A DNA stretch of 64,000 nucleotides from Callorhinchus milii (GCF_018977255.1 NW_024704745.1:24738001-24802000), one strand, 5' to 3'; shown: positions 11,025-46,356, numbered from the stretch's first letter. Made by a program: numbers and translations. The notes: generated by a model not told the origin, from the sequence alone.

Positions 11025-11108
11025 TTAATTGGATAATATATCGTAAACAGAGTTAATTCTTTCCAAGTAAACACTGGCCTGTTGTTGTATAGCAGATGCA
11101 CCTGATTC
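11025..11108 (-). CDS. Gene 1 terminal coding exon ESGASAIQQQASVYLERINSVYDILSN*
   Basis: ttatttcctctag|GAA...TAA, phase 0. Y-x-E-x-x-N-x-x-Y-D pattern like the CD200R tail. AATAAA follows at 11017-11012. Confidence 0.85.
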   Translation of the reverse strand, partial: ESGASAIQQQASVYLERINSVYDILSN

Positions 11109-11630
11109 CTAGAGGAAATAAAGTGATGGTTAGTTTCTAAACAGTAATTTTAGACAGCACTATTTGCTGACAGAAGTGAAATTTATAGAGGTTTATAACA
11201 CATGCAATGTGATCATACTGGATGCATTATGAAATGGAACATATTTCAAATTATTTCTAAAGAATGGCTGTACAACAAAACACCCCTCTGGCTTTCATGC
11301 ATTGGATGCATTCCTATCCACCTCAAAATCTGCAACAGAACAATGATTGCAACAGAAAAATGAAGCCTCTGCCAGAATCTCTTTGTAACTAGTTGCAAGA
11401 AGGTACTCTATCTTTTAATGAGGGTACTCTATCTTTTAACATCCAGCCCTGCTCCTGTAGAAGTATAACTGTCCTTTGCTTGGTATTCCCTCTTTTTGAT
11501 GCCACAGTTGAGTCACAGATTCAATTTGTGGAAAACAGTAGGACAATAATCTTTATATGTACAAAAAAGTGCACCATAAATTTACTGTTGGAGCATTGCA
11601 TACTGATTGTGTGTAAAATGTAATAATTAC

Positions 11631-11667
11631 CTGTGTATGTACTCTGTTAGTAGGTTTGGTCTGCTTC
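11631..11667 (-). CDS. Gene 1 exon 4, juxtamembrane cytoplasmic KQTKPTNRVHTQ
   Basis: aaaaaatgtag|GAAG...CACAG|gtaatt, 37 nt, phase 2-0. Links the TM exon to the terminal exon in frame. Confidence 0.8.
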
Positions 11668-12574
11668 CTACATTTTTTAAAATAAAAGAAATCCATTATA
11701 TTGACTGATATCTGACTTATTTTCTCCTGATAAATTGCAGATATCACTTGACAAAATTTCAATCATTACATTACATTACATGATTAATTTTTCAATGCAG
11801 ATATTAGCACACGTCAATTACACATTATGTTTTGGCTACCAATGTTCACCATAACAATTACTTGAAACAAAAAAAGGAAACATATTTGTTGACACCATAG
11901 TATATGCTAAAAAACAAGTCAGTCAAACAAGCTTGACAAGCATTTCAAGGGATCAGGTGGTTGCTGTAAAATCAAACAAATTAAGGCTTGCTATTTTTGG
12001 AAACATACTATATTCACATGGAAAATACTGAATGGTGTGCATAAGAGTATTTTCCTCACTTGCAAATGCAAAGCAATGCAATAAACTGTGTTAAAGTTAT
12101 TTTGGGTGTTGTGCATTACCTGATCATTGTGAAGTTTAAAAAGAGTAAAAAGCTTAGGATAATAAATGAAGAATGAACATTTAAAATCTTTGATGATACT
12201 AATAATACTTTCCTAATAGTTTCTCGAATTAGATAAGCAAGATGCGTCCATCCAGGGAGAAAGTGTGCATTCCATTTAAATAATCTATCTCTGGGATTTC
12301 CATGTAGATGGGATGCATGTAATTCTCAGCTTGGTTTGGATACTCTTAAACATGGTGATGGATTTCCGCATATGTCAGACACCTGGCTGGCAAAGAAAAA
12401 TTATGATTCTAAGAAATAGACAGCCATCTTTTTTGAGAAAAGTAATGCCGTTGTTTTGATGTTATTTCTGTTTTTGTGATGATCTACTGTCATTTGTTGA
12501 ATCAGAGACTGATCTATTATTCCCTTTTGCTTTCTACTGATGAGGTGAACATCAAATATCTGAGGCGAGCTTGC

Positions 12575-12960
12575 AGCAACAACAACTCCATTTATAAAGC
12601 ACCCTTCACGCAGGGTAGTGTCTCGGAGTGATTAACAGTGGCGAAGCCTGACTCTAAGCTAGGGGGCGGGGGGGACGCGACCTTAGGCAGGTCGAAGAGG
12701 AAGGTCTTCAGGTGTGATCTGAAAACGGGAAAGGAGGAGGCAAGGCGGGGAAATTGAGGAAGAGTGTTCGAAAGTTTCAGGGCAAAGTGGCTGAAAGCAC
12801 AGCCATTGATTGTGGAGCAACAACAACAACAAGATTACATTTGTATAGTGCCTTTCATGTCGGGAGGACATCCCAAGGCGCTAGAGGGGATGAGGGACAA
12901 CCAAGAGGCAGGAGCCAGCTGAGGGGTGGCAAAGGGTAGTGAAGTGAGGAGTGAGCACGT
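12575..12960 (-). mobile_element. Two nested L2 3' fragments in gene 1 intron 3
   Basis: Two reversed tails (caacaacaac) with L2 3' motifs. Confidence 0.75.
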
Positions 12961-13313
12961 CAGAGAGGAGTGTGAAGATCTTGAAGTACACAGAATGAAG
13001 TCAAACAAGGGAAACCTTCATAATGCTGGAAAGAGATAGCAGGGTCTTCCCTTCAGAGGGAGAAAGCTGGGAAATCTGATTTCAAAACCCAGAGGCAAGT
13101 GCAACCTTGAGCTCACACAAGCCCATCTAGCAATCCATCAAATACCTTCAGATAGTGTCAGGGGGGAATGCAAGTTACACACTCTCTAACCTGGCGTTAT
13201 AATGAGTTTGGGCTGTTAAGGTTACAAAAGAAAACATATTGATCTATAGTATCACATTGCAGCTTATATATTTTACCATTATAACGTCAACCAGAGTTTA
13301 GCAACATACTTAC

Positions 13314-13401
13314 ATTTTCCAAATAATGATAATGATGATTACAGTGATAACGATGATCGCTATGGGTGAAAGAATGTATAACAAAATAATTCTCATCTGA
13401 T
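13314..13401 (-). CDS. Gene 1 exon 3, transmembrane (D)QMRIILLYILSPIAIIVITVIIIIIIWK(M)
   Basis: ttctgtcttctag|AT...AAAAT|gtaagt, 88 nt, phase 1-2. About 23 uncharged hydrophobic residues, in frame with the IgV exon. Confidence 0.9.
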
Positions 13402-14399
13402 CTAGAAGACAGAAACAATCAGTTTATAACAGATATTCAGGTGAAAAATGCGGTTTGTTATATGATAATTAGCAGTAGCAGCAGTAATGGTAGTAATTAA
13501 CACAAGTGCTATTATAACTGCCGAACCTTGCACTGAAACCATTCAATAATTATTGACTAGCTCACGGTGATGAATGGATTGACCTACAGCTTGATTGATA
13601 TGTTGGCAGCCACCATTGTTGTGGCTGTCCATGGACTGTTGCATTTCAGTGGTACTTGTTATGTTATGTTATGTACTTCATGCGATAAATTTAGTTGAGG
13701 TCAGGGCAGATTTTCATAATTGTTACTGAATGGTTTGATTGAATATTTTGCAATGTTAGAATTAGCACCAGGGATGATTAACACATCACATGCCCATTTT
13801 TCACTGAATTCATCATTTCAGTTTTCACAATTGATTATTGCAGTTAAATTCCACATCTAGTTTTTCTGCTTCCTAAATCTCTAACACCAATAGATATCAG
13901 AAGAGCACATGTTACTAGAAATTAATGAATGTCTACAAAGAAACAAGACCATCCAGGATGCATGTGAAGATCTTTGAGGAAACACCAAAAGAAATAGGTG
14001 AGGCTCCAATTAATTGTTTACAAACTCTGTAAGCACATTAGAGCTATACCTGAAGAGCGGAGCATTGGAATTATTATCCCGAAGTTCAAAAAGGCAATGA
14101 TATGTTAGCCTGGAAATTATAGATTAGTTATCCTAATAAACAAATGCTGGTTTATTACAGCTCCATGGAGACCTCACTTATCTCCCTTCTCTACCCCAAA
14201 GGATTTTGCTGGTTAATTGGTGGGATTTCTGATTATCAGTCTATGGGAGGCATTTATAAATATGAAGTGTAAGTGTCAACAGACAGGCATTCAGAATTTA
14301 TTGTTGAAGGGATTGTTCCTGATAAAGACTCCCTAACACTGTTGGAGAATTTTATTCATCATGTTTTGGTAAAATTACTAGCCTTTGGCAGCATGTGTT

Positions 14400-14740
14400 T
14401 TATGGTATTAATAGAAAGTGCATTATTGGTGTTATATATTTACAATATAATATCTTTTTACATTTATACATTGGGAGGAGATTTGGAATGTTATCCAATA
14501 GTAAAAAAAATTGCAAGGAAGATTTTCTCCTTTAGTGTTTATTCTTATAGGTTGAGGGAACAATCTTGTATGAGCGGGAACATTTGTTGCATGACGACAG
14601 AAGGAGTCAGGAATCAGCTACCACTTGTAAATTTGTGGAAATATCATGTGGTGTAAATAGTCCAGTTTCCAAAACAGCAATAATGTCAATATCAGGTTCA
14701 TAGCATTCAAGAAAATCTGGATCAATGACACAAATAAGCA
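14400..14740 (-). mobile_element. LINE APE-endonuclease relic
   Basis: Minus frame DIDIIAVLETGL resembles the endonuclease DIIAxTETWL motif. Confidence 0.5.
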
Positions 14741-14769
14741 AGAGAGTGGCGGATAGTTTTAATGTAGAT

Positions 14770-15133
14770 AAATAATAATAATAACCCTTGTATTTGATAT
14801 AGTGTTTTATCACATCTTCAAAGCATCTCAAAATGCTTCACAGAATATACTGAAAGTGAATTGACTGTATATTTTATGGGCGAAATGCGGCAGCTAATTC
14901 TGCACAGCAGTGTCCCACAAACAGTCATGGATTGAAGTGATCAATTGTGAAGGAATTATTACCCCCGGAAAAGCCACTCCCCAATCGACTAACAACCGGA
15001 TTCCTACTTACTGCTAGGTAAACAGAGGCTTGTGGAGTAAGGAAACTTGCCCTACATTTTGCCCTACCGGGAATCAAACCCAGGTCTCTCGCTCGCGAGG
15101 TGAATGTTCTAACCATTGAGCTACAGGACTCCA
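14770..15133 (-). mobile_element. tRNA-derived SINE, long subfamily
   Basis: Head plus an extra gtttacctagcagtaagtagga...gttagtcgattgg segment that the short copies lack. Confidence 0.85.
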
Positions 15134-15350
15134 AATGTATGGCAATGGTGATTGGAACAAGAAGCCACAACTATGAAGGAGGAATAGCAAGTGCCAAGGT
15201 CTGTAACTAACAGTAAACAGAGAATAATCCCCACAAAACTCCTACCCTTTGCAGATTATGCAACAGAACAATGGAAACTGATTAATAAAGTATACATCTT
15301 TTTGTTTTTAGTAAAACAGATTAAGATGTAAGAAAACAAGAAGCACTTAC

Positions 15351-15674
15351 CTTGTACATTAACAAGATATGAGTTTGTGATGCACAAATTGCCTGCTATC
15401 AATGTGCAGTTGTATGTTCCTGAATCAGAAAGCTGCACATTCTGTATCTGTAGACTGTAGAGTTCCTGAGGACTTCGTAAGAGCACAAACCTCTGGCTGT
15501 TATTCCATTTGTATGTCAGGTTGCGTACCACTTGATATGCAATAATAAGTTCACTTGTACTGTTGGTTATTTTGAACCAGCTCACTTGAGTTATGTTTAT
15601 CACTGAGGTGTTCCTACACTGAAGAGTTATTGTTTCTCCGACTGAAGTGTTAACAGATTCTCTGTCATCAGCAC
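15351..15674 (-). CDS. Gene 1 exon 2, IgV-set domain (CD200R-like)
   Basis: gtttccttcgcag|GT...CAAG|gtaagt, 324 nt, phase 1-1, open: ADDRESVNTSVGETITLQCRNTSVINITQVSWFK...SLQIQNVQLSDSGTYNCTLIAGNLCITNSYLVNVQ. Canonical B-strand Cys, C-strand Trp and D-x-G-x-Y-x-C. Confidence 0.95.
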
Positions 15675-17785
15675 CTGCGAAGGAAACTGTTTAACCAAAA
15701 ATGATTGTGATGTGAAGAAACCTGTGATAAACAAATTTACACTTTACTGCAAATTAGAAGCATGGTGTGAAAATTGTGATGCTTAATAAGTATCACATTG
15801 TATCTGTTAAGAAACAGCAATTTGTAATCTATTACAAAAGACAAGCTGCTGGTAAGAAAGCCTCTGGCCCCCAACCTTAGCATAGTTATGACATTTTTTA
15901 TCACTTAGACATCTATTTCGTGGAATTCCCTTCCGAATAAAAATATGATTGAAAGGGAAGACACTCTGAAATGACAGGTACTCTCTTTGACAATAGACTT
16001 AGTGTGAGCCCTGAGTTATTTGCAGTTAGCATGCAGGTGACAATGGGAATGTATTTGATATTTGGTTACAAGATGAGCTGATGTGCATTAGAAATAAACT
16101 ATTATTGGATCAACTGACCAATTGACCAAGCAACAATGTGTAAGCATGGTTAAACTGGTGACATTGGTAAGCCTCATTGTATAAACATTATGAATTACTG
16201 TAAAACTAAGAATCTATCTCATAAATGGTGCACATTCAGCAAACGTTTTACAAATGCCCATGGTCTAAATACATTCAAAATACAGCTTCATTAGCAATAG
16301 ATTTTCATGACCTGGGGGAATTGGTGAATATGAAAAGAAGAATCATACTCATCAAATTAAGTTGCATAATATTGGAACTTAGAATCACTTCTTGATTGGG
16401 ACATTTCATGAATGAGAAATGCCAGTATTGAAAAGCTCCAAATTTTCAAATAGCAAATTGTGAGCTTCACTAAAGGATTAAAAATGAACAAATCCTGCAC
16501 CTACTGGGTTGTTTTTCACAATGATTGAACCTGCTTGAGAGCTGATCTAATTTCTATCATCTGTGACAAAAAGGAGCGCCTAGTGACTGTTCAGAGATTA
16601 TCGTCCGGCTGGTCTGTACAATACACATCTAGATATGTGCAGGAGTTAATAGTTTAGAAAGCTTATGATTCCTGAAAAATTGATCCCAATATATATATAT
16701 TTTTTCAACAACTCCCTCCTAATATTTACACTGTATTCTTCTGGGTCAGACAGTATGTTTCATAATAATATACATCAATATAATAATTTCTGTTCATACT
16801 GATCATGGAAAACCTCATTGCAGTAGTTCTAAGGTGAAACATTTCCGTTTTTTTGTTTCTGTATTAGAGCTGATGAAGTGTGGAAGCATTTGAAAATATT
16901 TGATTTCTCCCCAAGAATCGATATCAATCAATTTATCCTTTTGAATTTTGAATTCACCTTGACTTTCATGGTGAGAATAATAGAAATTTAGAGTGCAGAA
17001 GGAGAGGCTGTTTAGCCCAACCAGTCTGCACCAGCTCTCAGAGCAAGTTGTTCTTTCCATCTCACTGATCTGTCCTAACCCTTCCAGATTTATCTTTTAT
17101 CTGTAATTAATTCTATTCTACGCCTTTTCTATCTCTTTTTAGTTCCTGAGCAGCATTGAAAATTTTAAACTCTGTCTTGGGACGTCCTCCCGACGTGAAA
17201 AGCGCTATACAAATGTAATTTTGTATTTTTTTGTACTGTATTATAACCAAGTCTAGTATTTACATAAATTTGTCTAACAAAGTAAATAGAGTCAAAACTG
17301 TTTTCAGGAACCACTCAGGGTGGCCATTATATAAGGGTGGCCTGTGGGTAAGGGTGCGTTGATTAGTTGGCTGGTTCTGAAATTATTAAAACATTTCCGT
17401 GGGTTAAAAATTTCTTTGGGCCCCACGTGTAGACTCTCGCTGGACTCCTAGCGCATTTACCAACACCTCCTCACCAGTGAGGTGGGAAGCTGTGGGCATC
17501 ATGTAGAGTGCTCAGCATAAGCCCCCGGAAATTGATAATGCATTAGTGGTAAGTACACTCAAATTCAGTTTCCCCTTGGGAGAGAGAAAAAAATAAGCGC
17601 AATCACCCAAATTAAAATTGAATTTAAGGCAGCTATCGAAAAATTGATAATTCTTTAATTTAAAGACTGTGATGTTACAAGTAAGAACATACAAACTACA
17701 CTTAAATTGGTTGCTTTAACAAGTTTGACTGTATATTAATTGAATCACTTTTAAAATATTAAGATTGTAAATATTTGAAATATAG

Positions 17786-18180
17786 TAACAACAACAACAA
17801 GATTACATTTGTATAGCGCCTTTCACGTCGGGAGGACATCCCAAGGCGCTGGACAGTTTACAGCATTTCAGACCCAAGCTGGGGTCAGGGGGGAAGAGGG
17901 GAGGGGAAGGGGGGTGGCCGATAGCATGGTCGAAGAGGAGGGTCTTGAGGCGGGACTTGAAGGCGGCTAAGGAGTGGGCGAGGCCATGGAGGGCTTTGTA
18001 GGTGAGGACCAGGATTTTGAACTGGATCCTCTGAAGGATAGGGAGCCAATGGAGTTGGGCGAGAATGGGGGAGATGGGGTCACGGAGTTTGGTGTGGGAG
18101 AGGACACGGGTTGCAGAGTTCTGGATTATCTGCAGCCTGTGGAGGGAGGAGTTGGGAAGGCCGACAATCAGGGCATTTGT
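17786..18180 (-). mobile_element. L2 3' fragment with internal deletion
   Basis: GLPNSSLHRLQIIQN...LHWLP motifs in ORF 17803-18243. Confidence 0.85.
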
Positions 18181-23959: not shown

Positions 23960-24029
23960 CTGAAATGATGAATAGAATCCAAACAATTTCAGTGTGGAGG
24001 GGTGATCTATAAGAGTTGCAACACTTCAT
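23960..24029 (-). CDS. Gene 1 (CD200R-like) exon 1, signal peptide MKCCNSYRSPLHTEIVWILFIISG
   Basis: ATG at 24029 and 70 nt (23 codons+1) ending TCAG|gtaaag. The phase-1 donor matches the phase-1 IgV exon. Hydrophobic IVWILFII core, a TATA-like box about 45 nt upstream, and an end similar to the gene 2 leader (ILIVISG). Confidence 0.75.
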
Positions 24030-24060: not shown

Positions 24061-24131
24061 GCCCACATCTATTTTATAGCAGCGATCCAAATGTGGGCAG
24101 AGCATGCACCGTGTGGTTTCTCCTTCCTGTG
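24061..24131 (-). promoter_or_regulatory. Candidate core promoter of gene 1 (TATA, RUNX-type and ETS-type sites)
   Basis: TATAAAA (minus) 24078-24072, TGTGGTT 24112-24118 and TTCCTG/CAGGAA 24124-24129, all within about 100 nt of the ATG. Motif matches only. Confidence 0.45.
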
Positions 24132-24879: not shown

Positions 24880-25240
24880 ATAAATGACTCCATAGCCTTT
24901 CCCAACCCTATCTTGGTGATCTCCAGCAACTCTCCTCTCTTGGCCACTCCGTGCCTGCTCTTTTCTCCTTCATTTCCCCACCCACTCTGCCCCACCATCA
25001 ACAGATGAGCGATCAGCTAGTTTGTCCTCCACTCACTCTCTGGAACTCCTCTCTGAAATCTCATTGCCTTGTCTTTCACTCTCGATTTTCAAAACCAATC
25101 TAAGTACTTATCTGTCTGATGGTGTTTTCAGCTATCTACCCCTTCATCATCCTCCCAACTCGAGCTCCCACTCAGTCTTTGCAAAATAATTTGAGATATT
25201 CTCCTGATGTGAAAGGTGCTATATAACTGCAACTTGTACT
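24880..25240 (+). mobile_element. Old L2 3' fragment
   Basis: ctctggaactcc...tgatgtgaaaggtgctatataa end motif. Confidence 0.6.
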
Positions 25241-25789
25241 TGTGAGTTGCTGGCTAGAGAAAGGGAAAACAATCAGTCAGAGTTCCCACATAGGATTGCT
25301 ATCTAGTGATCCCTGCAGGAAATATATTTGTGGACATTGTGGAAGGACAGGATTGGCTCCCACAGTGGTACTGTCTGCCAGCACTTTCTAGCTCATTCCT
25401 GGCTCACACCCAAAGACGATCATTTAGATTATTACAAAAATAATCTGTACCAGTTGTGCAACTAAGCTCCTATGTGAGCTGTTGCTTTCAGGCTTTAACC
25501 AAAAGTTTCTTCAGATAGAATGAAGCCTATAACGACTTAATATTTCTTCACTGTTTATAAGAGGTATAAGATTTATAACACTGTTTATTGTTCACTTCCT
25601 CTTTCCCCACTTGCAAAGCCCACCTCAAGACATACCTCTTGGACCACAATTTTGATCATCTGTCCCCTCCCATCCTCTTCAGCCACTCTTCCTGACTCAG
25701 ATGTCCAGCCAGCAGTATAAAGTATTCCTGACGTGAAAGGAGTTATACAAATGTATATTATACTATCTTATTTACTCCTCACTTGAGCA

Positions 25790-26610
25790 ACAACATCAAC
25801 AACAACAATAACACAATTACATTTGCATAGCGCCTTTCACGTTGAGAGGACATCCCAAGGTGCTGGACAATCAGTGTTTTGGACCCGAGCTGGGGGTTGG
25901 GATTGGGGGGGTGGTGGGGCGGAGGGCAGGATGCAATGATGGTGATCGAAAGTACAGTCAAAGAGGAGGGTCTTAAGATGGATCTTGAAGGAGGCAAGGG
26001 AGGGAGCGAAAGGACTGTGGGATGGAGTTCCAGAGGGTGGGGGCAGAGTGACTGAAGGCCCGCCCACCGATGGTGGAGCTGGCGAGGAGGGGGACGTGAA
26101 GCAGGCCGGAGCCCGTTGAGCGGAGAGAGCGGGCAGGTTGGTAGGTTAGGGGGTCGCAGAGGTAGGGGGAATGAGGCCATAGAGGACTTTAAAGATGAGG
26201 ACCAGGATCTTGAACTGTATCCTCTGTGTGATGGGAAGCCAATGGAGTTGGGCGAGGATAGGGATGATACGGTTACGTAGCATGGTGTGCGAGAGGACAC
26301 GGGCAGCAGAGTTCTGGATGATCTGCAGCCTATGGAAGAAGGAGTTAGGGAGGCCGACAAGCAGGGAGTTTGAAGTCAAGCCTGGATGTTATGATGCTTG
26401 TATGAGGGTTTTGGAGGCTTGTGGTGTGAGACAGAGGTGGAGCCGGACAATGTTGTGGAGGTGAGGGAAGGCAGAGTGGGTTATGGCGTGGATGTGGGCT
26501 AGAAAGGATAGTTGAGGGTTAAAAGTCACCAAGGTTCCAGACTGGCTTAGCAAGGTGGAGTGTGCATACTTGGATGGTGATTCTGTCAGGACCTGAGGTG
26601 TGAGCAGTGT
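25790..26610 (-). mobile_element. L2 3' fragment
   Basis: ORF 26146-26379 GLPNSFFHRLQIIQN...LHWLP. Confidence 0.9.
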
Positions 26611-30925: not shown

Positions 30926-32261
30926 ACAAGCTGATCAACAAGCTGATATCACTAATAGACATTTACAGTATTTTGTGTGAAATGCTTTAAGATGTCTTGA
31001 AGATGTGTTAAGGTTTTATATCAAATGCAAGGATAATTAATGTATAACGTTAAGTTGTGACCCACCAAGTGCAAAGTGTTATCTTAAATTTCCCTTTGCG
31101 CCCGATGAGTTTGACACCACAATGTCGCACTTGATATCTTATTTTACACAATGAAGTCACTTTTTACCAGTAATGTAACAGTTTGAGACTTCATCCTCAT
31201 TGAGTACATCCTGTGACAATTGGTTAATATCCACACCTTTTATCTTTCTTAATTAGCCGAATAAACATTTTTCTTTGACAGTAAACAGCAGTATTTGTTG
31301 TCCGGATTCAATATTTGCATATCCTGTTGTGAGTATGTGCTTTGGATCCCACCATATGTCTACTCATACAAATTAGTATCAGTCACCAATTAATCTGTCT
31401 TTTTTAAAGCTACATAGGCACAAATTCTTAAATACTTTGATCTTTGAGTAGGAAACCAACATTAAATTTAACATCTCTCCTCATAAAACCTTATAGAAAA
31501 ACAAGCCATAGACATTCGTAACTGTGAAAGTACTCTATTTCTGTGGCTGAAAATCGTTCACTGTAAGGTTTGGTCACAATGACACCCACTTCCAGTTCAG
31601 AGTAACCATATGCTAATATGATCAACTGCTAGATAATTGCATTCCTTCTTGTATACTTAAAGCAGGAAGTGACTTTAGAAGGGACCTTAAGACTTCAGAA
31701 TGTCCATTTTAGCTTCAAACTTCAATAGACCAATGTCTGGTTTATTAGTTCGGTAAAAATGTCATTTCCTGCTTTGTGAATGTGCAGAAAATTGTTCCTG
31801 ATGAACTGGAAATTGGACAATTTTTCTTTCAGCACAAAAGCAGTCATCCCACAGTGAGGAAGTCAGCTGACTGCGCACATGTGCATAACGCAGGATGGGA
31901 TTTTATGGATCACAATCACTGTGTTATAGAGACGCCACTGTTCTAAAGAGTTAGCCAGATAAGAAAACAACAGGAGCTGTAATATCAACAAATCACAATT
32001 AATAACATTGCCATAAAGTTTGTGGTAGTTTCTTAACTAATTTCCTTGTGTCAATTAGCACACAATGGGTTAAGAAATGGTGCCGATGCCTTCCAAATAT
32101 GTAATTGCCAGTGCCTTGTGCTTCTCCCGAACTTTATGAAAATATGGAAACACGGAGGTACAGTTGGGTGTCAGCATATTTATGGAAATAAACAACTTCC
32201 ATTGTATTCAGCGTCACATGAAGAGTCCTAACTTATATTCCTCATACCTCATTGCCTCTAT

Positions 32262-33800
32262 TAACAACAACAAAATTACATTTGTATAGCACCTTTCATG
32301 TTGGGAGGACGTCCCAAGGCGCTGGACAGTCAGAGTTTTGGACTCAAGCTGGGGGTTGGGATTGGGGAGGGTGGAGGGCAGGGGGTAGCAGGGTGATCAA
32401 AAGCACAGTTGAAGAGGAGGATCTTGAGATGGGTCTTGAAGGAGGCAAGGGAGTGGGCTAGGTGGAGGGACTGTGGGATGGAGTTCCAGTGGGTGGAGGC
32501 AGAGTGGCAGAAGGCCCGCCCACCAATAGTGGGGCGAGCGAGGAAGGGGAGGTGAAGCAGGCCGAAACCCGCTGAGCGGAGGAAGTAGGCAGGATGATAG
32601 GGGGTTAGGAGATCGTAGAGGTAGGGGGAGCAAGGCCATGGAGGGCTTTGAATGTGAGGACCAGGATCTTGAACTGTATCCTTTGTGTGATGGGAAGTCA
32701 GTGGAGTCGGACGAAGATGGAGGTGATAGTGTCACGGAACCTGGTGCAGAAGACATGGGCTGCAGAGTTCTGGATGATCTGCAGCCTATGGAGGGAGGAG
32801 TTGGGGAAGCCGACAAGCAAGGAGTTTACATATGTGTATGTATGCAAGCTTTGGCGGCCTGCGGTGTGAGACAATGCCGGAGCCGGGCAATGTTGTGGAG
32901 GTTGGGGAAGGCAGAGCAGGTTGTGGCACAGATGTGGAGTAGAAAGGATAGTTGAGGGTCAAACAAGATATCAAGGTTTCGGACTGTTTTAGTAAGATGG
33001 AGTGTGCAACCACGGATGGTGATGCTGTCAGCGCCTGAGGTGTGGAGGTGCTGACAGGAGCCAATCATGAGAGCCTCGGTCTTGTTGACATTCAACTGAG
33101 AAAACTAGCTCTCATCCAGGACTTGATGTCCGACAGACATTCTGTCAGGACAGCAGAGGACCTGGAGTCACGGGTGAAGGCAGAAAGGTACAGTTGGGTG
33201 CCATCCGCACAATACGGTTGATGTCACTAAGAGGGAGCATATAGATATTGAAGAGGAGGGGACCAAGGACAGAGCCCTGATGAACACCGCACAAGATGGT
33301 ACAGGAACTAGAGGAGAAACCGTTTGTGGATATGAAGTGTAGGTGGTGTGAGAGATACGATCTGAACCAGTCAAAGACAGAGCCATGAAGGTTGAGGTGC
33401 GAGGAGAGGCTGTGGATGAGGATAGAGTAGTCGACGATATCAAAGGCAGCAGAGAGTTCAAGGAGGATGAGGAGGCAGAGGGAGCCCTGGTGTCAGATGG
33501 ACAGAATGTCATTTGTCACTTTGACCAGGGCTGTTTCTGTGCAGTGGGCGGCACAGAAACCCGATTGGAGGGGTTCATGAAGGGAGTGGCAGGAGAGGAA
33601 GGAGTGAAGCTGGGAAGCAACAAATCATTCCAGGACTTTGGAGAGGAAAAGGAGGTTGGAGACGTGTCAGTAATTTGAGAGTAGGGATGGGTCCAGGGAG
33701 GGTTTTTTAAGGATAGGAGGCCGTTTTTAATGGGGTGGGAACAGTACCAGTGGACAGGGAGAGGTTTATAATGTCTGTGAGTAGAGGGGCAAGGAAATAG
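32262..33800 (-). mobile_element. L2, RT to 3' tail
   Basis: Continuous similarity to 1959-2715 and 25790-26610. Confidence 0.9.
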
Positions 33801-34155
33801 AGCAGGTATCAGCTCTATGTTTTCCTCTTTAATGTCTCTATTACTTAGTTAAACATGTTCATATATGTCAATGGTCATTTAATATGATTATTCTCCAGTT
33901 ATCCGCAATTAAGTAATCAGTTGTTCAGTACATTATCTGTGATAATGACACTTGCAGTTACTGTATTGTTGAGTTCCCCATACAGAACTCTGTCCTCCCG
34001 TAATGTGTCACACAACACCCTGAAAGCAATCAGCACAAAGTTATTTCTTTATTCATTATTGCAGACAATCCGATTTGTGTCAAACAGGAATACAGATTGG
34101 TTTTAAACGTAACACATACAGAAGGAAACAAACAATCAGATTACAGACTCCACAA

Positions 34156-34477
34156 AAATAATAATAATAAAAATCCTTGCATTTGATATAGCGCTTTTCA
34201 CGTCGGGAGGATGTCCCAAAGCGCTTCACAGAACACACTGTAAAGTGAATTGACTGTATATTTGTGGGCGAACGCGGCAGCCAATTGTGCACAGCAATGT
34301 CCCACAAACAGTCGTAGATTGAAAATTACCAATTTATTATTGTTTTGGGTTTTGGAGGGATTATTATTAGGCGTGTGGAGTAAGGTAACTTGCCCAAGGT
34401 TTCGCCCTGCCTGGAATTGAACTCAGGTCTCTCGCTTGCAAAGCGAGTGCTCTACCCACTGAGCTACAGGTCTCACT
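34156..34477 (-). mobile_element. tRNA-derived SINE, short young subfamily
   Basis: Nearly identical to 6559-6888 and 41214-41540. Confidence 0.9.
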
Positions 34478-34955
34478 AGTTACATAATATAGTTTTGAAT
34501 CACATTCCCTCTCTGTAACACAGATTGAGAATTTTTACAGCATTTATAACGAAAACAACTCAACAGGTGGGTGAACACTTTTGCTCTAATCTATAAAGTT
34601 ACTTATATAATACTTTTGCTTCGTTTTTGATTAGCATGTAGCCAGCAGATTTATGACTTTAACCACATAATTTTTATTCCTCTGTATTTTATGTACACTG
34701 TATTATAGGGTAATTAAAATTGATATATATTGAACAAATTTGTTTGTAGACATTCTTCTTGTACTCAGTATTTGGCATTATTAAATAATTGATTGAATTA
34801 ACATAATTTTATATCATACAATTAATTAAAATATACAGTCTAATTCAATAACAGTCAGTACAGACTGTGTGAAACTTTCTTTCACCTACTTTATAACACA
34901 TTTCTCTAAAGGAGAATATCCTTAAATGAATGGAACTTTGCTTCACAGACATTAC

Positions 34956-35014
34956 CTCAAATAATGAATAAATTACAATGGACACAGCATGAAAGGGCAA
35001 TTTAATAGAGACAT
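34956..35014 (-). pseudogene. Disabled paralogous leader exon
   Basis: AAGATG...TTATTTGAG|gtaatg aligns with the gene 2 leader. It is 59 nt (out of phase), has an in-frame TAA, and has TGA where TCA is expected. Flanks 34760-35110 resemble 46100-46470. Confidence 0.65.
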
Positions 35015-36419
35015 CTTCTTTGTGCTGAAAGTGCTCATGAAATAATGTCTCACGTCCCTTTAAATGATTCTTATGTGATGATGGTTTTCAGTTCCTTGAT
35101 ACACACCTCGTGAAACAGTTAATTTTCTCGTAGCAGGTAAAATACTGTTAGAGAGGTATTTTCTGGTGTCCATGGCTGCAGTGAGAGTGAGGCCTTGATC
35201 TTTCCTTTGCTTCAGGAGCTGCAGAGCAGTGGCAAGCAGGCAGTCAGGGCTCTGGTGTTGTACAACCCACAAGATTGCAAGATTTGTCTGCATAAAGAAA
35301 TCTCTTTGGCCCATCCAATCTCTTTGCTCCAGAACATCCACCCTACCATCCCCCCATCACAGCAACAAGCTGCTTTTTAAATGAGTCCAGTGTTTCAACC
35401 ACACTTGACAAACTGTTTCAGTCATTAAAAAAAATTACTTCCTGGTATCTGTCCTGAGACTGTCCTGTGCAATTCTAAACTCGTGTCCTCTTGACTTGTT
35501 GTATCCTGTATTGATTTGCATTTACTTTTTCAATCCCATTTATAATGTTGTACACATCTATAAGATTCCCCATGGTGTCATGTCTGCAAATTGGTTGCTG
35601 AGTGTAGCTAAAAAATATAGTCACTGCTCCAGTAAATTGCGTCTTGAGGTGTTCTCCTGACACGAAACACACTATATGAAATGTTATAATGTATTAAAAT
35701 ATTATTATATTTTTTAATGAATGGTGGGATCTAAAATGTTAAGAAAAAGAACTGAATAGTGGGAAAGGAGAACATCAGTTTCTAAGATTATTACAGAAGT
35801 AGACGATGCACTGTCTAGAATTTCATTCCTAAAATGGTCAACTTTAAGATTATCAGTTTGCTGCTTTGCAAGTGCACAGGAAATGTGAAGTGAACTTTGT
35901 ATTTCAGGAAACCCACGAGCCAAATACATACATGGAGTCAAACCTGCATGCCTTGCTGTAGCACAGGTTGGTACCTATCTTAACCTAGCCTCGGCAGAAG
36001 CCGTTCCTGTGCAAACCGCTCAGGGCGCACCCAAAACTATGACTAAAATAACCATGAGAGTAACCATATAACTGTATGGCAGGATGCTCTAAATGTAAAC
36101 AAAGAGCGTCTTGAAAACGTATGCATGGTAAACATGTGCACCTACGTTGCACATCGGGGCGTCTGCTGAAAGCAGCAAATGCACCTTATCAGCGTGTGCG
36201 CGGGGGCGCAAATGGATGTGGTGCACACTGCGGTGACTCCCGATTGGTTTAAAGGGAGCATCCCAAAAAAAACACGGGTGCACGACATGTGTGGTGGAGG
36301 AATGTAACGTAAAGAGCGGAATGTTTTCATATTGGGAGCAAAGGGAAAAGCCTAACAGTTGTACGTTGTGTTTTTAGTTTGAGATTTCTGTCCGTCGCAA
36401 ATATTACATTTAAGAAACA

Positions 36420-39364: not shown

Positions 39365-39860
39365 CAGACCCCCACATCAGGTCCCTAACCAAGACCGCTT
39401 TCCTCCACCTCTGATCTGTATCTCACCCCCAACACAGCCAAAACCTTCGTGCCACCTCATCAGCTGCCACCTCAAATATTCCTATGCCCTCAAACTGGTC
39501 TTCAGGATCCTCTCAATTGTCTACAAATGCCTTCATGCCCTGGCACTTCCCTACCATTCTGACCAGCTTTCTCCCCATTCCACTACTCGCTGCCTCTAGC
39601 CTCCTGCTAGTCCCTCGGCCCCTCTGCTCCACCATCGGCAGCTGTGCTTTAAGCCACTATGCCCCAAAGGTTTGGAAATTTCTTCCCCAATCCCTCCGCC
39701 TTGCCTCTCTCCCTCTTTTAGATCCTTCCTCTTCGGACGTGCTTATGATCATTTCCTCCCGCTCCCTGGCTCTGCATCAGGCTCTGCCATCGTTAAGTGC
39801 TCCAAATCGCTGCCCCTCATGAAGGACACTATTATAAATGCAAGTTGTTGCTGTTGTCTG
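39365..39860 (+). mobile_element. L2 3' fragment with deletions
   Basis: ccaccatcggcagctgtgctttaagccactatgcccc and an L2 3' tail. Confidence 0.7.
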
Positions 39861-40240
39861 AATCAGCGGTATGTCATTTATATATAAAACGTGAGAATAT
39901 TTATTCTACCAAAGACAATAATGGCAATTCCCAGTTTACAAATCCAAAATGGAATAATAACTCCAACTGAGTGCAGGTGGAGATCTGCAGGTCTGGTTGT
40001 GAAACATTAAGACACAAAAGGCAGATTGAGAAGTGATCCCCTCCCCACTCACCAGGGGACTGAAGCAGAAAATATCACAGGCTCCTCGATCCATATTGTG
40101 TATTTAAATGAGTCATTATGATTAAAGTGGAAACTATATCTTTTGCTAATCTACGACATATATAAAATAATTCAAGAGTCAGTTCTGTAGCCCGGAGCTT
40201 TGAAGTAACCACTATTTTAAGCGAGACATTCATAACTGAA

Positions 40241-40413
40241 CTATTCCACGTACTGTATTTCAAATAGTTTAGTCTCATTACATAAATTAAGCTGACCATA
40301 AGTTTTACCACACTGCTTTCTGTTCAGGTACAAAGCCCACATAGCTACAATTGTCGTGATTCCTATTGTGATTCCAATGAGATGAAGAATCATCTGTAAA
40401 AATCTTTGTGAAT
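40241..40413 (-). CDS. Gene 2 exon 3, TM (D)SQRFLQMILHLIGITIGITTIVAMWALYLNRKQC plus short tail (3' end uncertain)
   Basis: ctctgtatcttcgtgcag|AT acceptor, phase 1, in frame with the IgV exon. Hydrophobic stretch followed by RK. Either splices at G|gtaaaa (40309) or reads through to a stop at 40241 (186 aa total). Confidence 0.7.
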
Positions 40414-41193
40414 CTGCACGAAGATACAGAGTGTAATGAATACCACACAACAGTAATCCAACTGTCAGACCCTGGTTTATAACACGGGATGGTGGATGGG
40501 GGAAAGCTGAACCTCTCAATTTAAAACTCAATTGCTCAGAGCATCTTATTGAAGTATAGAAAGTCACAATATAGAAGAAAGCCATTTGGCCCATCGTGTT
40601 TCTGCTGGCTTTTAAGAGCAACCATTTCAGTCCCATCTATCTGACTTTTAACTGTACCCCTGTAGTTTTCTCCTTTTAGGTACTTATTTAATTTCCTGGA
40701 ACCTTAGATCATTGTCACAATATTTTAAAATTGAAAAATAGTCAATCCACTGTGTGCGTGTGAAATTAAGTCATCTTAATTTCTATTGACTGAAATTATT
40801 TGGTGATATTTCACAGCGTAAACCAGGCAAGAAAGCCAGATCATTGTATTCCTGGAGTTTTTCCATCATCAATGATCACCATTAATTTGACAAAATTTAC
40901 GCTTTGTGGATTAAGCAACACAGCAGTGAAATGATTCAAAAAGTGTGCATGTATTTGTGTTTTTAGTAAAAGTTTAAGATAGAGAGCAGGAAGTATCTAC
41001 TTGGGCATACAATAACATGGTGCCAGTTAGAGGTATCATATTCAAGAATTATTATTTTTGTTATTGGATTATGAACTAATACTCAATGTTCCATTTCTCT
41101 CCTGTTCTGCACAAGGTTATTGTCTTTATTTGCTAGTTCCTTGTCTACTTTTGATTACATTTTTATTAAATTTGATTAAATTTAGGGCATGAA

Positions 41194-41540
41194 GGAGTCC
41201 TGTAGCTCAGTGTGGAGTCCTGTAGCTCAGTGGTTAGCGCACTCGCTTTGCAAGTGAGAGACCTGAGTTCAATTCCAGGCAGGGCGAAACCTTGGGCAAG
41301 TTTCCTTACTCCACACGCCTAATAATAATCCCTCCAAAAACCAAAAACAATAATAAAATTGGTCATTTTCAATCTACAACTGTTTGTGGGACATTGCTGT
41401 GCGCAATTGGCTGCTGCGTTCGCCCACAAATATACAGTCAATTCACTTTACAGTGTGTTCTGTGAAGCGCTTTGGGACGTCCTCCCGATGTGAAAAGGGC
41501 TTATCAAATGTAAGAATTATTATTATATTATTATTATTAA
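41194..41540 (+). mobile_element. Short SINE with duplicated 5' 20 nt
   Basis: ggagtcctgtagctcagtg at both 41194 and 41214. Confidence 0.9.
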
Positions 41541-41784
41541 TTTGTATGCGAGAGTGAGGACATTGAGTTGATCCATTTGAAGACAGGAAGCGAGTGGGGC
41601 CTGGTAAGATGGGGTGGGGGTTTCTTGCAGGTGAAGATATGGGTGTCACAGTATTATATTAGCTGAACCTTGTGGAACAAGGCAGAACAGCGAATAGTGC
41701 AAAACCATTATGCAGATAAAAAAAAGTATTGCAGATGGATTTCATGTATATAAAAGTAAGAAAATGTACTTTGCAACAAGATAG

Positions 41785-41835
41785 ACACACACACACACAC
41801 ACACACATACATACATACCTACATACATACATACA
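41785..41835. repeat. (CA)n/(TACA)n microsatellite
   Basis: Direct inspection. Confidence 0.9.
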
Positions 41836-41974
41836 AACGGGAAGTGGAGAATAACATGAAATCATTGCCAAATATTGTGACAGAAAAATCACGACAGTGT
41901 TCCTGCGTTTTGCAGATAAAAACAACATATTTTAGAAAAACAATTTAAAAAGTTAGAAAACAAGAAGCACTTAC

Positions 41975-42298
41975 CTTGTACATTAACAAGATATGAGTTT
42001 GTGATGCACAAATTGGGTGCTATCAATGTGCACTTGTATGTTCCTGAATCAGAAAGCTGCACATTCTGTATCTGTAGACTGTAGAGTTCCTGAGGACTTC
42101 GTAAGAGCACAAACCTCTGGCTGTTATTCCATTTGTATGTCAGGTTGCGTACCACTTGATATGCAATAATAGTTTCACTTGTACTGTTGGTTATTTTGAA
42201 CCAGTTCACTTGAGTTACGTTTATCACTGAGGTGTTCCTACACTGAAGAGTTATTGTTTCTCCGACTGAAGTGTTAACAGATTCTCTGTCATCAGCAC
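41975..42298 (-). CDS. Gene 2 exon 2, IgV-set domain nearly identical to gene 1
   Basis: 324 nt, phase 1-1, ag/gt flanks, open frame. 7 nucleotide differences from 15351-15674. Confidence 0.95.
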
Positions 42299-43359
42299 CT
42301 GTGAAGGAAACTGTTTAACCAGAAAATGATTGTGATGTGACGAAAGTTGTTAATATTTGTTCTTTCTAGCTCATAATAGCCAGAGACCTGCTGCCCTGCA
42401 ATCCCAAAGCGGAGAGAAAGTGGGGTAGATTTGTTTACAGTTTATACCCCCAAGCTCTGCTCCCTCTCTTGATTAAACTGCAACATCCTCATCTCTTAGT
42501 CAGTTAACGTATTGCTGGATAGTCTGCAACAGGGAATTTTGCGCATTACACAACATGTTAGTAAGGGCTTTTGTGACCCCAGAAATAGACCAGTAGCTAC
42601 ATAGGCTACATGTCCAGCAAATGTTTTTCTAATTATCGTACACAATCGTTAAATAGAATATGGACAACACATTGACATTAATTCAAAATAGGCTGCTGGA
42701 AGGAAGCAGAGGATAGTTGTTAGAGCAGCTAAGTCAAAATGAAGGGAAGTATTAAAATGAAATATTATCTTAATTGAGTTCCAACATTTATGTGTCAGTG
42801 TCATTTTCTACAATTCTGCACCTAACGTCAATGTGTTACATCTGATTAACACTGTAATATTGTTTTATGTGCCAGCAGCAAATATACAGTCACCTCATTC
42901 TCAATTGTTCCACCCATCAACATAAAAATGTATTATTTCAAGTGATGCACAAATTTCAAGCATGTAAAGTGATTATAACAAAATAATCTTCAAGCCAAAA
43001 ACAACGACATAAAGTACTGTAAAAGTAGAACTCATGATCCACAGAGCGCTTGATCTGCTACTTGATCTGCTCCTGGAGGTGTCCCAGCTGTAGGGGAACA
43101 ACCAGTCCCAGACTTTGTGCAACTGGTTTCACACAAAACTGGTCACTGCAGCCATGAGCTGACAAGTAGCATTTCTGAGCATTTCCATGCTGGATCAATG
43201 AACCCTGATTTAAGTCAATTTTATAAGTTATCAACTGTGACATCTACACAAACATAATATATCACACTACATTCTGCATTTTATCACCTAAAAAATTGAT
43301 TAAAAGCCTCAGTTTGTGGAAGGCTTGCAAGAACCTCATCAAAAAAACGATTTTCATTG

Positions 43360-43742
43360 GTGTGTCGTCCTTTAGCGTATCGGTTAGAGCACTCATCTCG
43401 CAAACGAAAAGACCCGGGGCAGGCCGAAATGTTTGGCAAGTTTTCTTACTCCACACGCAGTGGAGTATTTACCTAGCAGTAAGTAGGAACACGATTGTTA
43501 ATTGATTGGTGGATTGCTTTTCTGAGGTAATAATCCCTTCAAAGAATAAATAAAAAATAATAATAATTTTGTCACTCAATCCACGACTGTTTGTGGGAAG
43601 CTGCTGTGCGCCATTAGCTGCCGTGTTTCACCCACAAGGTATACAGTCAGTTCACTTAACAGTAAATTCTGTGAAGCGATTCAAAATGTCTCAACGACGG
43701 GATAAGATGCTATATCAAATGCAAGGATTATTATTATTATTT
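43360..43742 (+). mobile_element. tRNA-derived SINE, long subfamily, diverged head
   Basis: tttacctagcagtaagtaggaac segment, body and tail. Confidence 0.8.
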
Positions 43743-44133
43743 AACAAAGCTACAAACAATTATTTAAAAAAGCCTATTGTAAATTGGTGCTCATTAAAAT
43801 TGTGTCAAAACTTAAAGAAACAGGTAGCAGCATTAGTTTTTGATAACACTGTCTGTTTAATATCATTAAAAATGTCTCTTAAAATTTCTCATCCAATGAA
43901 TTTGATTGGAATGTCCAAGAACCCTTAAAGGATCAGCTCTCAGCAGAACCTGAATTGATTTGCTGAGTTTACACTACAGCACATTGATCTGCTTCTGAAC
44001 ACACTGTTCTCGGCAGCCGTGCTCCAGGATGTTTCAATTAGTATCACATTGCTCAACCCCAATTTATCCTGCACCAATTGTGCAGTTCACTGTGAAGAGT
44101 CCCATATAAATCTGAACTACAGAATATTTCTAA

Positions 44134-44403
44134 AGTCCTGTAGCTCAGTGGTTAGAGCACTCGCCTCACAAGCAAAAGACCTGGATTAAATTCATGGCAG
44201 GGCGAAACCTTGGGCAAGGTTCCTTACTCCACACGCCTGATAATAATCCCTCAAGAAAAAAACAGCAATAATAATTTGGTCACTTCAATCCACGACTGTG
44301 GAAAAAATGCAGTCACTTCACTTTACAGTATATTCTATGAAGCGCTTTGAGACGTCTAGAAGACGTGAAAAGTGCTACATCAAATTCAAGGATTATTATT
44401 ATT
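44134..44403 (+). mobile_element. tRNA-derived SINE, short subfamily, internal deletion
   Basis: Head gtcctgtagctcagtggttagagcactcgcctcacaagc and tail. Confidence 0.85.
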
Positions 44404-44984
44404 AAAGTCTCATGTTGACGTCTTAGAAATGTTCCATTCGGCAACTAATATAATCCTTCCGAAATTTTGATGGCCAATAACTTTCAATAGTTCACTTGTT
44501 CACATTTTTTTAAAACTTCTATCATGTTGAGTAAATCTCATTCATTTTATTAACTTGCTGAAAATCTACAGATATGTTGTGTGCAAAACTCCACTAGTCT
44601 GAATGTTCCCCATGTTACACATTCAGCTTTCATTTAATAAACAGTTAAAAATATCTTTAATCCTTGCAAGTATGTTTCGATCAACTGCTACATTAACAAA
44701 TAACAACATTATACTGAGCATTATCTGTAAATGTACATTTAAAATATTATTTAAAAAATAAACAATTTCCTAATTATTACAATAGAATGTAGAAACAGAT
44801 GGCAACATTTTGTTAACTTCAGCCCTGAGTTCAGGACAACTTCATGTGGTTCAACTTTTGAACAAAATATTAGAGAATAGCTATTTTGTTAGAATGTTTC
44901 TGAGTGAAAAAGATTATTTTGTTCCTGATGCAGTTTTATCCAACATTAAAAATGTACCAATGATCCTTCTGGCAGATTAAACAA

Positions 44985-45290
44985 TTATAATAAATCTTTA
45001 CATTTGATATAGTGCCTTTTACGTCGGCTGATATTGTATTGAGGTACTGGAGGAGCATTGCATTGCTAAAGGCACCGACTTTCAGATAAGACATTAAACC
45101 GAGGCCCCATTTGCCAGTTTGCGACACTAATTGAAAGAGAAGGGAAATCCTGGTATCCTGGATTTTATCCCCCAGATAAAATTGGTCATTCACTTCATGG
45201 CTGTTTGTGGGACATTACTGTCTACAAATTGGCTGCTAATTTGCTTCCAAAAATACAATCATTACACTTTGCAGTAAATTATGTGATGGG
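44985..45290 (-). mobile_element. Old Deu-type SINE fragment
   Basis: aaggcaccgactttcagataagacattaaaccgaggcccc is the reverse orientation of the Deu-like core at 21860-21900. Orientation of the pieces is uncertain. Confidence 0.5.
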
Positions 45291-46292
45291 CTTTGGACAT
45301 ACTCCTAACATGAGTATATTAGGAGTATGTCATTCTAGGAATTGCAAAGAGTATTTTACAATCTGATGGAGTAGGAGAAGAATGTGAATATTCCATAAAT
45401 TCATTAAGACATTATACAGCAGTAAGATTACAGTCCTGCATGGTTACAAGCACTCGATCAATCACACAGATGTCCAGTACCGTTTGCAGAATGTATGATA
45501 TTCTTATGTAAAAGATTATTAAAAGAACCGAGGCTCAAGGATGCACAGAATTGTGGAAATTCTTAAATTCAATCTTAATTTGAAAGCTGGTTTTCACTTT
45601 TCATCTGTCACACAGGTTGAGGATATTTGCAACATTTACAATAGAAACAACATAGCAGTAAAGTAAGTATTTTTGTTCCATTCTGTAAAGTAGATTTATA
45701 GCTATTGACCAGCAAATATTTTAGCCATTGTTGTTAAAGTGAACTGACTGTATACTTTGTGGGTGAAACACGGCAGCTAAATGCACGCAGCAGTTTCCCA
45801 CAAACAGTCATGGATTGAGTGACCAAATTTTTATTATTATATTTTTATTCTTTTGAAGGGATTATTACCTCGGAAAACCAATCCATCAATCGACTAGCAA
45901 TCGTTTATTACTGTGAACTAAAAATACTACATTTGTTGGTTGGTTTTCTACCATTCCTAAATATAATTAACTTACAAATTAAGACTAAATTTAGGAATTT
46001 TCTTCAATTCTGTACATATTACAATGCATTGAAAATTCTAAAAGGATATTGAACTAATCCAATAAAGAGACCAGTTTATAGATATTCTTTTTCTACTTAC
46101 CATTTGGCATTGATAAATAATTAACATTATTTTAGAATATCACACAATTAATTAAAGTTTACAGTCTGGCGTACTAATATATATTCAGTATGGCTTGTGT
46201 GAAACTTTCACCCACTTTACAGCACAGTTTTGTGAATGAGAATCTGTTCTATAAACACAATAATAAATGGAAATCTAGTTTGTGGACTTTAC

Positions 46293-46356
46293 CTGAAATA
46301 ACAATTAGAATATGAATGATCGCAGAGTGAAAGAACAGTTTATCAGAGAACAGCAT
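46293..46356 (-). CDS. Gene 2 exon 1, signal peptide MLFSDKLFFHSAIIHILIVISG
   Basis: ATG at 46356, 64 nt (21 codons+1), ending TCAG|gtaaag like the gene 1 leader. Confidence 0.75.

Follow-up and report, generated by a model that had tools for sequence, protein, structure and literature searches.

Two gene units share a near-identical V exon

We analysed a 64-kb stretch of genomic DNA from the elephant shark Callorhinchus milii (GCF_018977255.1 NW_024704745.1:24738001-24802000; hereafter the window), which contains no runs of N and holds two minus-strand gene units of a single immunoglobulin (Ig) superfamily family. Gene 1 extends from 24029 to 11025 and is a complete five-exon gene, while gene 2 extends from 46356 to approximately 40241. 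Only two V-set exons occur in the 64 kb, one in each gene (Table 1). Both are on the minus strand, have phase 1-1 and match the Pfam V-set family with an E-value of about 1e-15 (8.6e-16 for gene 1). As proposed in a preliminary description of this DNA, the two exons are almost the same: they lie 26.6 kb apart on the same strand and differ at 7 of 324 nt. Five codons are affected, two of them by a double-base change, resulting in the substitutions I27V, S31N, L42T, N88K and G94P, and 102 of the 107 V-domain residues are identical. The predicted fold of the domain (AlphaFold) has nine strands and a predicted local distance difference test score of 84.9. UniProt entry A0A4W3IWP7_CALMI matches the gene 2 V exon at 97%, and independent public protein models contain both V copies.

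Tandem acceptors 12 nt apart precede both V exons (15675-15686 and 42299-42310). The same arrangement is conserved in the basking-shark locus (25069-25092), where it accounts for the VYFT that distinguishes RefSeq isoforms X1 and X2. Both elephant-shark V domains also have a third cysteine at residue 97 (…GNLCITN…; approximately 15382-15384 and 42006-42008), which is not found in the sharks. Conceivably, this cysteine is unpaired and could link two molecules into a disulphide-linked dimer.

Gene 1 has the exon structure of two shark loci

Gene 1 was compared with the loci of the basking shark (XP_078401018, LOC144682500) and the horn shark Heterodontus francisci (CM071041.1). Exon number, order and phases are the same in all three. 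Both shark loci have five exons with these phases, the AAAAT/GTAAGTAT donor (a slash marks the exon end), a last exon of 27 codons and the tandem acceptors before the V exon. The gene 1 leader shows 48% identity to the shark leaders (tblastn, E-value of 0.001). Its transmembrane (TM) exon encodes DQMRIILLYILSPIAIIVITVIIIIIIWK(M), with no charged residues within the span, and ends in the donor AAAAT/GTAAGTAT; this donor and the start of the following intron match the basking-shark TM exon with a score of 35, against a maximum of 28 for shuffled sequences. Exon 4 is short in both sharks as well, with a length of 1 mod 3 (52 nt in the basking shark), and has the same position and phase as in gene 1. 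The last exon ends at a TAA stop (11025-11027), and an AATAAA signal lies 8 nt past the stop (11012-11017). Reading exons 3 to 5 in this way bears out the proposal that gene 1 combines an uncharged TM segment with a tyrosine-motif tail; the stop falls at 11025, the start coordinate given in the preliminary description.

A direct splice from the TM exon to the last exon, as in UniParc model P0002, was considered as the main form of gene 1 and rejected. It skips exon 4 and produces a tail beginning NQVHLLY... in place of the conserved one. Only the five-exon frame yields the conserved tail, and the sharks keep the small exon 4 in the same phase. P0002 is therefore treated here as a minor or mistaken form, because its frame loses the conserved tail. 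Gene 1 is best explained as the elephant-shark representative of a gene that is conserved in cartilaginous fishes and predicted to encode a type I membrane glycoprotein. The predicted product is a single, heavily N-glycosylated V-set domain placed almost directly on the membrane, followed by an uncharged TM segment and a 39-residue tail.

A TATAAAA sequence at 24072-24078, 43 nt upstream of the gene 1 ATG, is a plausible putative core promoter. In the horn shark, the 513-aa RefSeq model XP_067890534 does not include the conserved last exon (APNEVVSEHDYYERINSIYNTSRPNTQ followed by a stop, at 77251-77334 of the locus sequence) and enters unrelated open reading frames. The Heptranchias orthologue is labelled 'opioid-binding protein/cell adhesion molecule-like', and the family is unrecognised in current annotation.

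Gene 2 has a different membrane exon and lacks the gene 1 tail exons

The gene 2 leader is 50% identical to the shark leaders. Its TM exon starts at 40413 and encodes ILHLIGITIGITTIVAMWALYL, exactly as quoted in the preliminary description; position 40309, beyond which that description found no gene 1 tail exons, is a candidate weak donor. The span ILHLIGITIGITTIVAMWALYL is a hydrophobic stretch of 22 residues, including a histidine and several threonines and glycines, with no Lys, Arg, Asp or Glu, and is followed by a basic stop-transfer sequence. In the DNA that encodes its core, ATTCTTCATCTCATTGGAATCACAATA, 23 of 27 nt agree with the horn-shark TM exon (score of 34, against a shuffle maximum of 25). 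We therefore regard the exon as homologous to the TM exon of the family, though diverged, and not as an arbitrary piece of intron. The exon is phase-compatible and open for 57 codons, for which the probability of finding no stop is about 0.016. Its ancestral donor is degraded to TT/GTACCT and the remaining GT sites are weak. Reading through the exon gives a 27-residue tail (…KTYGQLNLCNETKLFEIQYVE) up to a TAG at 40241-40243. This tail contains YGQL and no immunoreceptor tyrosine-based activation motif (ITAM).

No second copy of gene 1 exons 3, 4 or 5 was found in the window by tblastn or word-7 blastn, where all matches were interspersed repeats. The earlier statement that the gene 1 tail exons are missing downstream of gene 2 thus stands across the whole window. 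A match to CICCR/LALNYVVSG at 48.4 kb was rejected as chance, as it contains stops. Tail relics and further exons of the family were likewise not found in the window or in either shark locus.

The missing tail could in principle be supplied from gene 1. A single complex transcription unit starting at 46356 would join the gene 2 V and TM exons by a splice of about 28 kb to gene 1 exons 4 and 5, resulting in a second inhibitory isoform, and the TT/GTACCT site (phase 2) is indeed phase-compatible with the acceptor of gene 1 exon 4. This donor is weak, however, the splice would have to skip the promoter-proximal leader and the V and TM exons of gene 1, and nothing in the data supports it. We consider such a unit very improbable.

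Two side observations concern the gene 2 TM exon. Its frame is open for a further 74 codons upstream of the acceptor (131 in total; 40241-40636), which is unusual in DNA of 63% A+T. A weak phase-compatible acceptor upstream of the exon would add VGLLLCGIHYTLYLRA.

The composition of the span also bears on whether gene 2 could be an activating counterpart of gene 1, signalling via a transmembrane adaptor or through the tyrosine of its own YGQL. The layout mirrors that of CD200R/CD200RL, SIRPα/β and PILRα/β, with a shared ectodomain, a different TM segment and a short tail. The span is polar for a membrane segment (His, several Thr and Gly), and the read-through tail carries YGQL. On the other hand, Lys, Arg, Asp and Glu are all missing from the span, and it is through such a charged TM residue that all known activating partners are linked to DAP12, FcRγ or DAP10. 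The tail has no ITAM and would be an intron-derived read-through. As the gene 2 TM segment lacks Lys and Arg and there is no ITAM, a classical activating role is not supported, and we regard an activating gene 2 as improbable.

Table 1. Coordinates of the features identified in the window; a slash marks the exon end at donor sites.
Feature	Position	Strand	Description
Gene 1 exon 1	23960-24029	-	ATG and signal peptide MKCCNSYRSPLHTEIVWILFIIS; donor G/GTAAAG; ends in phase 1
Gene 1 exon 2	15351-15674 (alternative acceptor 15686)	-	V-set Ig; alternative form adds VSFA; phase 1-1
Gene 1 exon 3	13314-13401	-	Stalk DQMR, IILLYILSPIAIIVITVIIIIIIW and K; donor AAAAT/GTAAGT; ends in phase 2
Gene 1 exon 4	11631-11667	-	37 nt, (M)KQTKPTNRVHTQ; phase 2 to phase 0
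Gene 1 exon 5	11012-11108 with poly(A) signal (coding 11025-11108)	-	ESGASAIQQQASVYLERINSVYDILSN followed by stop; 27 codons
Gene 2 exon 1	46293-46356	-	ATG and signal peptide MLFSDKLFFHSAIIHILIVIS; donor G/GTAAAG; ends in phase 1
Gene 2 exon 2	41975-42298 (alternative acceptor 42310)	-	V-set Ig
Gene 2 exon 3	40241-40413	-	DSQRFLQM-ILHLIGITIGITTIVAMWALYL-NRKQCG...; good polypyrimidine acceptor
Tract, gene 1 copy	15306-15720	-	V exon and ~45 nt of intron on each side
Tract, gene 2 copy	41930-42345	-	96.2% identity over 416 nt to gene 1 copy
Decayed V-exon 3' end and intron 2 start	40890-41017	-	Inside gene 2 intron 2; donor destroyed
Pseudo-leader exon	34956-35014	-	59 nt; wrong phase; in-frame TAA at 34973-34975
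SINE, four copies of ~325 bp	4350-4680, 6558-6883, 34154-34474, 41204-41538	both	93-97% identity
LINE reverse-transcriptase fragments	68-1930, 25780-26600, 32260-33850, 62142-63601		Fill much of the remaining window

The V exons lie in a short, probably converted tract

The similarity between the two genes extends only slightly beyond the V exon. Over the whole tract the copies differ at 16 positions. The similarity reaches some 45-50 nt into the introns at approximately 88-90% identity and then ends sharply; in the next 100 nt on either side, the alignment is no better than that of unrelated DNA. The preliminary description had named an assembly or haplotype artefact as a possible source of the second V copy. 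High identity alone would favour it, but only 416 bp are shared, the introns differ, the copies are 26.6 kb apart, each unit has its own leader and TM exons, and the independent public protein models contain both copies. Because the tract is tiny, the copies have 16 differences and the exon sets are distinct, we consider an artefact excluded for practical purposes.

Conservation within the tract is four to five times higher in the exon than in the intron flanks (7/324 versus 11/95 differences, Fisher p = 4e-4). The same holds for synonymous sites, none of which differ (0/70 versus 11/95, p = 0.003). Such a pattern suggests that conversion was repeated or nested and had its centre in the exon, whether or not selection also acted. 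In the predicted fold, the five substitutions are found where the BC loop ends, in strands C, C' and F and in the FG turn, a placement with a probability of about 0.02 by chance. The C/C'/F/FG sheet is the usual binding sheet in V domains of this type. UniParc P0002, an independent model of gene 1, has the Pro94 of gene 2, which would be consistent with ongoing exchange.

Outside the 416-bp patch, blastn finds no similarity between the gene units, with the exception of 40890-41017. This segment within intron 2 of gene 2 is 72% identical to 15233-15364 of gene 1, which covers the V exon's final 14 nt and the beginning of the intron (score of 71, against a shuffle mean of 20 and maximum of 30). 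The young V exon of gene 2 lies about 960 bp upstream of this old, decayed V-exon end. Gene 2 thus combines an old decayed end with a young V exon, for which short-tract conversion or replacement from a gene 1-like donor into an old paralogue is the best explanation. By its position, the V exon looks like a secondary acquisition upstream of the decayed original.

A second relic, the pseudo-leader exon, lies within a 385-bp block (34742-35126) that is 68-81% identical to the 5' region of gene 2 and carries deletions of 4 nt and 1 nt. No V or TM exon follows it. The block seems to be a leftover from a partial duplication or from a third unit. This leader copy at 35 kb was also considered as the first exon of gene 1 and rejected for its 59-nt length, wrong phase and in-frame TAA; the true leader is at 24029. 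One copy of a short interspersed nuclear element (SINE) lies inside intron 2 of gene 2. A search for synteny found that the remainder of the window contains only SINE and long interspersed nuclear element (LINE) fragments.

These relics raise the question of whether gene 2 itself is a dead partial duplicate, not productively expressed, whose V exon is intact through recent conversion from gene 1. The AAAAT/GTAAGT donor is gone from gene 2 and the tail exons are absent, the decay products at 40890-41017 and 34956-35014 lie nearby, the lack of synonymous differences fits a very recent overwrite, and the Ensembl/UniProt model of gene 2 is a fragment only. Against this, the gene 2 leader has an intact ATG, hydrophobic core and phase-1 donor. 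The TM exon has diverged so far from that of gene 1 that the two are no longer recognisable as DNA, yet its acceptor is good, its hydrophobic span of 22 residues is followed by a basic stop-transfer sequence, and its frame is open for 57 codons. The exon within the tract is also more conserved than its flanks, and the differences are all amino acid-changing, clustered on one sheet and in two cases double-base. A dead gene 2 is the strongest of the alternative explanations, if on the whole an unlikely one.

The family is CD200R-like but lacks a C2 domain

The preliminary description had labelled the pair CD200R-like. We determined the relatives of the V domain with a HMMER scan of 1.84 billion representative sequences, which found close relatives only in sharks (V-domain identity of 55-59%) and more distant ones in sturgeons and bichirs, all of them unnamed or misnamed. 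Members in cartilaginous fishes are listed at NCBI as 'uncharacterized' or 'opioid-binding protein/cell adhesion molecule-like'. In a maximum-likelihood tree of 25 V domains, the fish family formed one clade with the human and mouse CD200R V domains with moderate support (82/83). The human TIGIT, CD200R1, PVR, CD96 and nectin-1 V domains used as references were verified against PDB chains, and CD200 was the mouse sequence from PDB. Bit scores per domain with a hidden Markov model of the family were 39.2/30.0 for the CD200R1 V domain and 36.0/35.5 for CD226 D1, followed by CD96 D1 (30.9), PVR (24.6), CD200 (20.5) and TIGIT (at most 22). The Foldseek top 15 included CD200R and CD200RLa, and the search did not separate the V domains of nectin, CD166, CD226, JAML, CD200R and CAR.

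We also considered CD226 as the family. CD226 D1 was the best single-sequence PDB match (E-value of 1e-8), but this candidate was downgraded as the CD200R1 V domain has an equal or better score per domain. A related lead, a bichir relative whose alignment with bear CD226 ran over the full length and took in DIY(I/V)N, was set aside as the tree instead favours CD200R, and it is weakened further by shark tails without YxN. A homologue search from an alignment including bear CD226 matched almost only mammalian CD226 and was uninformative on fish. In the bichir Polypterus senegalus, XP_039599617 has two V domains that represent a lineage-specific internal duplication, with D2 placed as sister to the bichir D1s (100/99). 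The bichir tail DDIYINSLTIP resembles EDIYVNYPTF of CD226, a likeness that is possibly convergent.

The tail provides a second line of evidence. In a study of 179 CD200R homologues, Timmerman et al. described a conserved core of Y289, [K/R]292, N294, [I/L]296 and Y297, with Arg292 in bony fish, Ile296 in birds and fish, and a mammal-specific Pro295 (PMC8007030). In the form Y-xx-[K/R]-x-N-x-[I/L]-Y, this pan-vertebrate signalling core of CD200R has been mapped functionally (PMC8007030). The last exon encodes YLERINSVY in gene 1, YYERINSIY in the horn shark and FYDRINSIY in the basking shark. The gene 1 core has the fish form (R292, an aliphatic residue at 296 and a residue other than Pro at 295), with Val replacing Ile/Leu at 296. 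As a measure of background, the core pattern occurs twice in 485,638 six-frame codons. The SVYDIL of gene 1 also fits an ITIM (immunoreceptor tyrosine-based inhibitory motif), (S/I/V/L)xYxx(I/V/L). The residues before the core read ...ESGASAIQQQASV in gene 1 and ...APNEV(I/V)S(G/E)HD(F/Y) in the sharks.

Several results speak against a straightforward assignment to CD200R. The phylogenetic affinity of the V domain with CD200R is only moderately supported. Approximately unbiased (AU) tests retain trees in which the family groups with CD226 D1 (p = 0.085), TIGIT (p = 0.105) or CD226/CD96 (p = 0.103). The ITIM fit is specific to the elephant shark, as the sharks have SIYYTS and SIYNTS, and the acidic stretch (E/D 278-282), P285 and Y286 are absent upstream of the core. 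In addition, neither a regular-expression search nor tblastn with the human CD200R1 C2 domain found a C2 Ig exon in the window or in either shark locus, and the five-exon RefSeq model of the basking shark lacks C2. Because no locus has a C2 exon and the upstream half of the CD200R motif is missing, we describe the family as 'CD200R-like, V-only' and not as a demonstrated CD200R orthologue. The earlier label thus holds for the tail core and the V-domain tree; it does not extend to the domain structure, and the AU test retains its alternatives. On these sequence features, the family is best regarded as CD200R-like and V-only, not canonical CD200R.

A probable duplicated receptor with a tail-less copy

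Both shark loci (85-94 kb) have a single V exon, so the pair appears to be an event of the chimaera lineage, in agreement with the preliminary proposal of an independently evolved pair. The deep divergence of the TM exons may leave a wide age range for the duplication. We infer, by analogy with CD200R, that gene 1 would encode an inhibitory-type receptor and, from the exons read here, that gene 2 would present the gene 1 V domain without the gene 1 tail. Taken together, we lean towards the explanation that the locus holds a duplicated inhibitory-type receptor and a tail-less, SIRPγ-like or decoy copy, whose V exon was homogenised by short-tract gene conversion. We consider this scenario probable, by a modest measure.

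In this scenario, ligand binding on the GFCC' face of gene 1 would lead to tyrosine phosphorylation of its tail, as in CD200R. The NxxY core could then recruit a Dok-type PTB adaptor, as CD200R does through Dok2/RasGAP, and/or SVYDIL could recruit an SH2 phosphatase, and the cell would be dampened. Gene 2 would be an old tandem paralogue that kept its leader and a strongly diverged, homologous TM exon and lost the exon 3 donor together with exons 4 and 5. A recent gene conversion or exon replacement of about 416 bp would then have made the V exons near-identical. As read, gene 2 would join the same V domain to a different anchor and to a short tail that is poor in motifs. Its most likely role would be to compete for the ligand of gene 1, or to act as a decoy for it, with little signalling of its own, in the way of SIRPγ, rather than to serve as a DAP12-type activator.

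Some findings sit uneasily with a functional pair. Gene 2 has no strong donor, and the nearest AATAAA (39900-39905) is about 340 nt beyond its stop. Exact look-ups of the spliced gene 1 and gene 2 proteins found none on record. All seven exon differences are non-synonymous, yet this is not significant alone (p = 0.17-0.29). Finally, the decayed V-exon end inside gene 2 and the broken third leader indicate that the locus is decaying in places.

A more specific version would combine a V-only CD200R with its signalling core (Y-xx-R-x-N-x-I-Y) in cartilaginous fishes and, in the chimaera lineage, a functional inhibitory/tail-less pair that arose independently and is maintained by gene conversion, accompanied by diversifying change of the binding face. 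We put this forward tentatively, as a possibility that is rather less than probable. A literature search on CD200R and cartilaginous fish found nothing relevant. If true, the chondrichthyan tail core would trace CD200R-type inhibitory signalling back to the ancestor of jawed vertebrates, where it would have preceded or lacked the C2 domain, and a CD200R-type module could work on a single V domain. The pair itself is a genomic prediction and opens no long-standing question.

The preliminary description had also presented the genes as a paired-receptor system. The shared ectodomain and the different TM segment and tail agree with this view; the basic TM residue and the ITAM expected of an activating partner are both missing from gene 2. 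The proposed reason for the pair, exploitation by pathogens, is pure inference. As far as its exons can be read, the locus is a plausible, if unproven, instance in a fish of the well-known paired-receptor design.

Comparison with known receptor systems

Among known systems, the mammalian CD200R1/CD200RLa-e (CD200R1L) genes are similar in the tail core, the moderately supported grouping of the V domain and the presence of a neighbouring paralogue that shares the ectodomain and has another TM segment and no inhibitory tail. Unlike the mammalian pair, the elephant, basking and horn shark genes have no C2 domain and lack the acidic stretch, P285 and Y286. The gene 2 partner also lacks a TM lysine.

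CD226, TIGIT and CD96 share (V/I)(S/T)Q in the C strand with the family (ITQ/VTQ here), and TIGIT, like gene 1, has a single V domain with tail tyrosines. V domains of the PVR-like type are characterised by the motifs (V/I)(S/T)Q, AX6G and T(F/Y)P. The latter two are absent from the aligned elephant-shark, shark, sturgeon and bichir sequences. YxN resembling an immunoglobulin tail tyrosine (ITT) motif is absent from the chondrichthyan tails; the relatives that carry it are all from bichir and sturgeon (DIYINS, DYYVNS). In contrast to a CD226/TIGIT affinity, the tree places the fish family with CD200R, if not decisively.

The SIRPα/SIRPβ/SIRPγ genes likewise have near-identical membrane-distal V domains that are kept similar among tandem paralogues. 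In SIRPγ, the TM segment is uncharged and the tail is very short and devoid of signalling motifs, and gene 2, as read, matches this description. SIRPs differ in having a V and two C1 domains and ITIM tails, and there is no sequence relationship beyond V-set; their V domains reach 36-39 bits, which are generic matches.

In Siglec-11/Siglec-16, a published account describes a conversion tract confined to the ectodomain-coding part (PMC5701461). This and other converted pairs share with the elephant-shark genes a short tract in the ectodomain part, sharp edges and diverged flanks. They differ in belonging to another family, and here the tract is a single 324-nt exon flanked by some 45 nt at either end, while the remains of an older exon end persist in its vicinity. 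With a one-exon tract of 416 bp, sharp edges and five fixed amino acid differences, the locus represents a compact case of ectodomain homogenisation, and the elephant-shark pair may be convenient for studying how paired receptors stay alike yet different.

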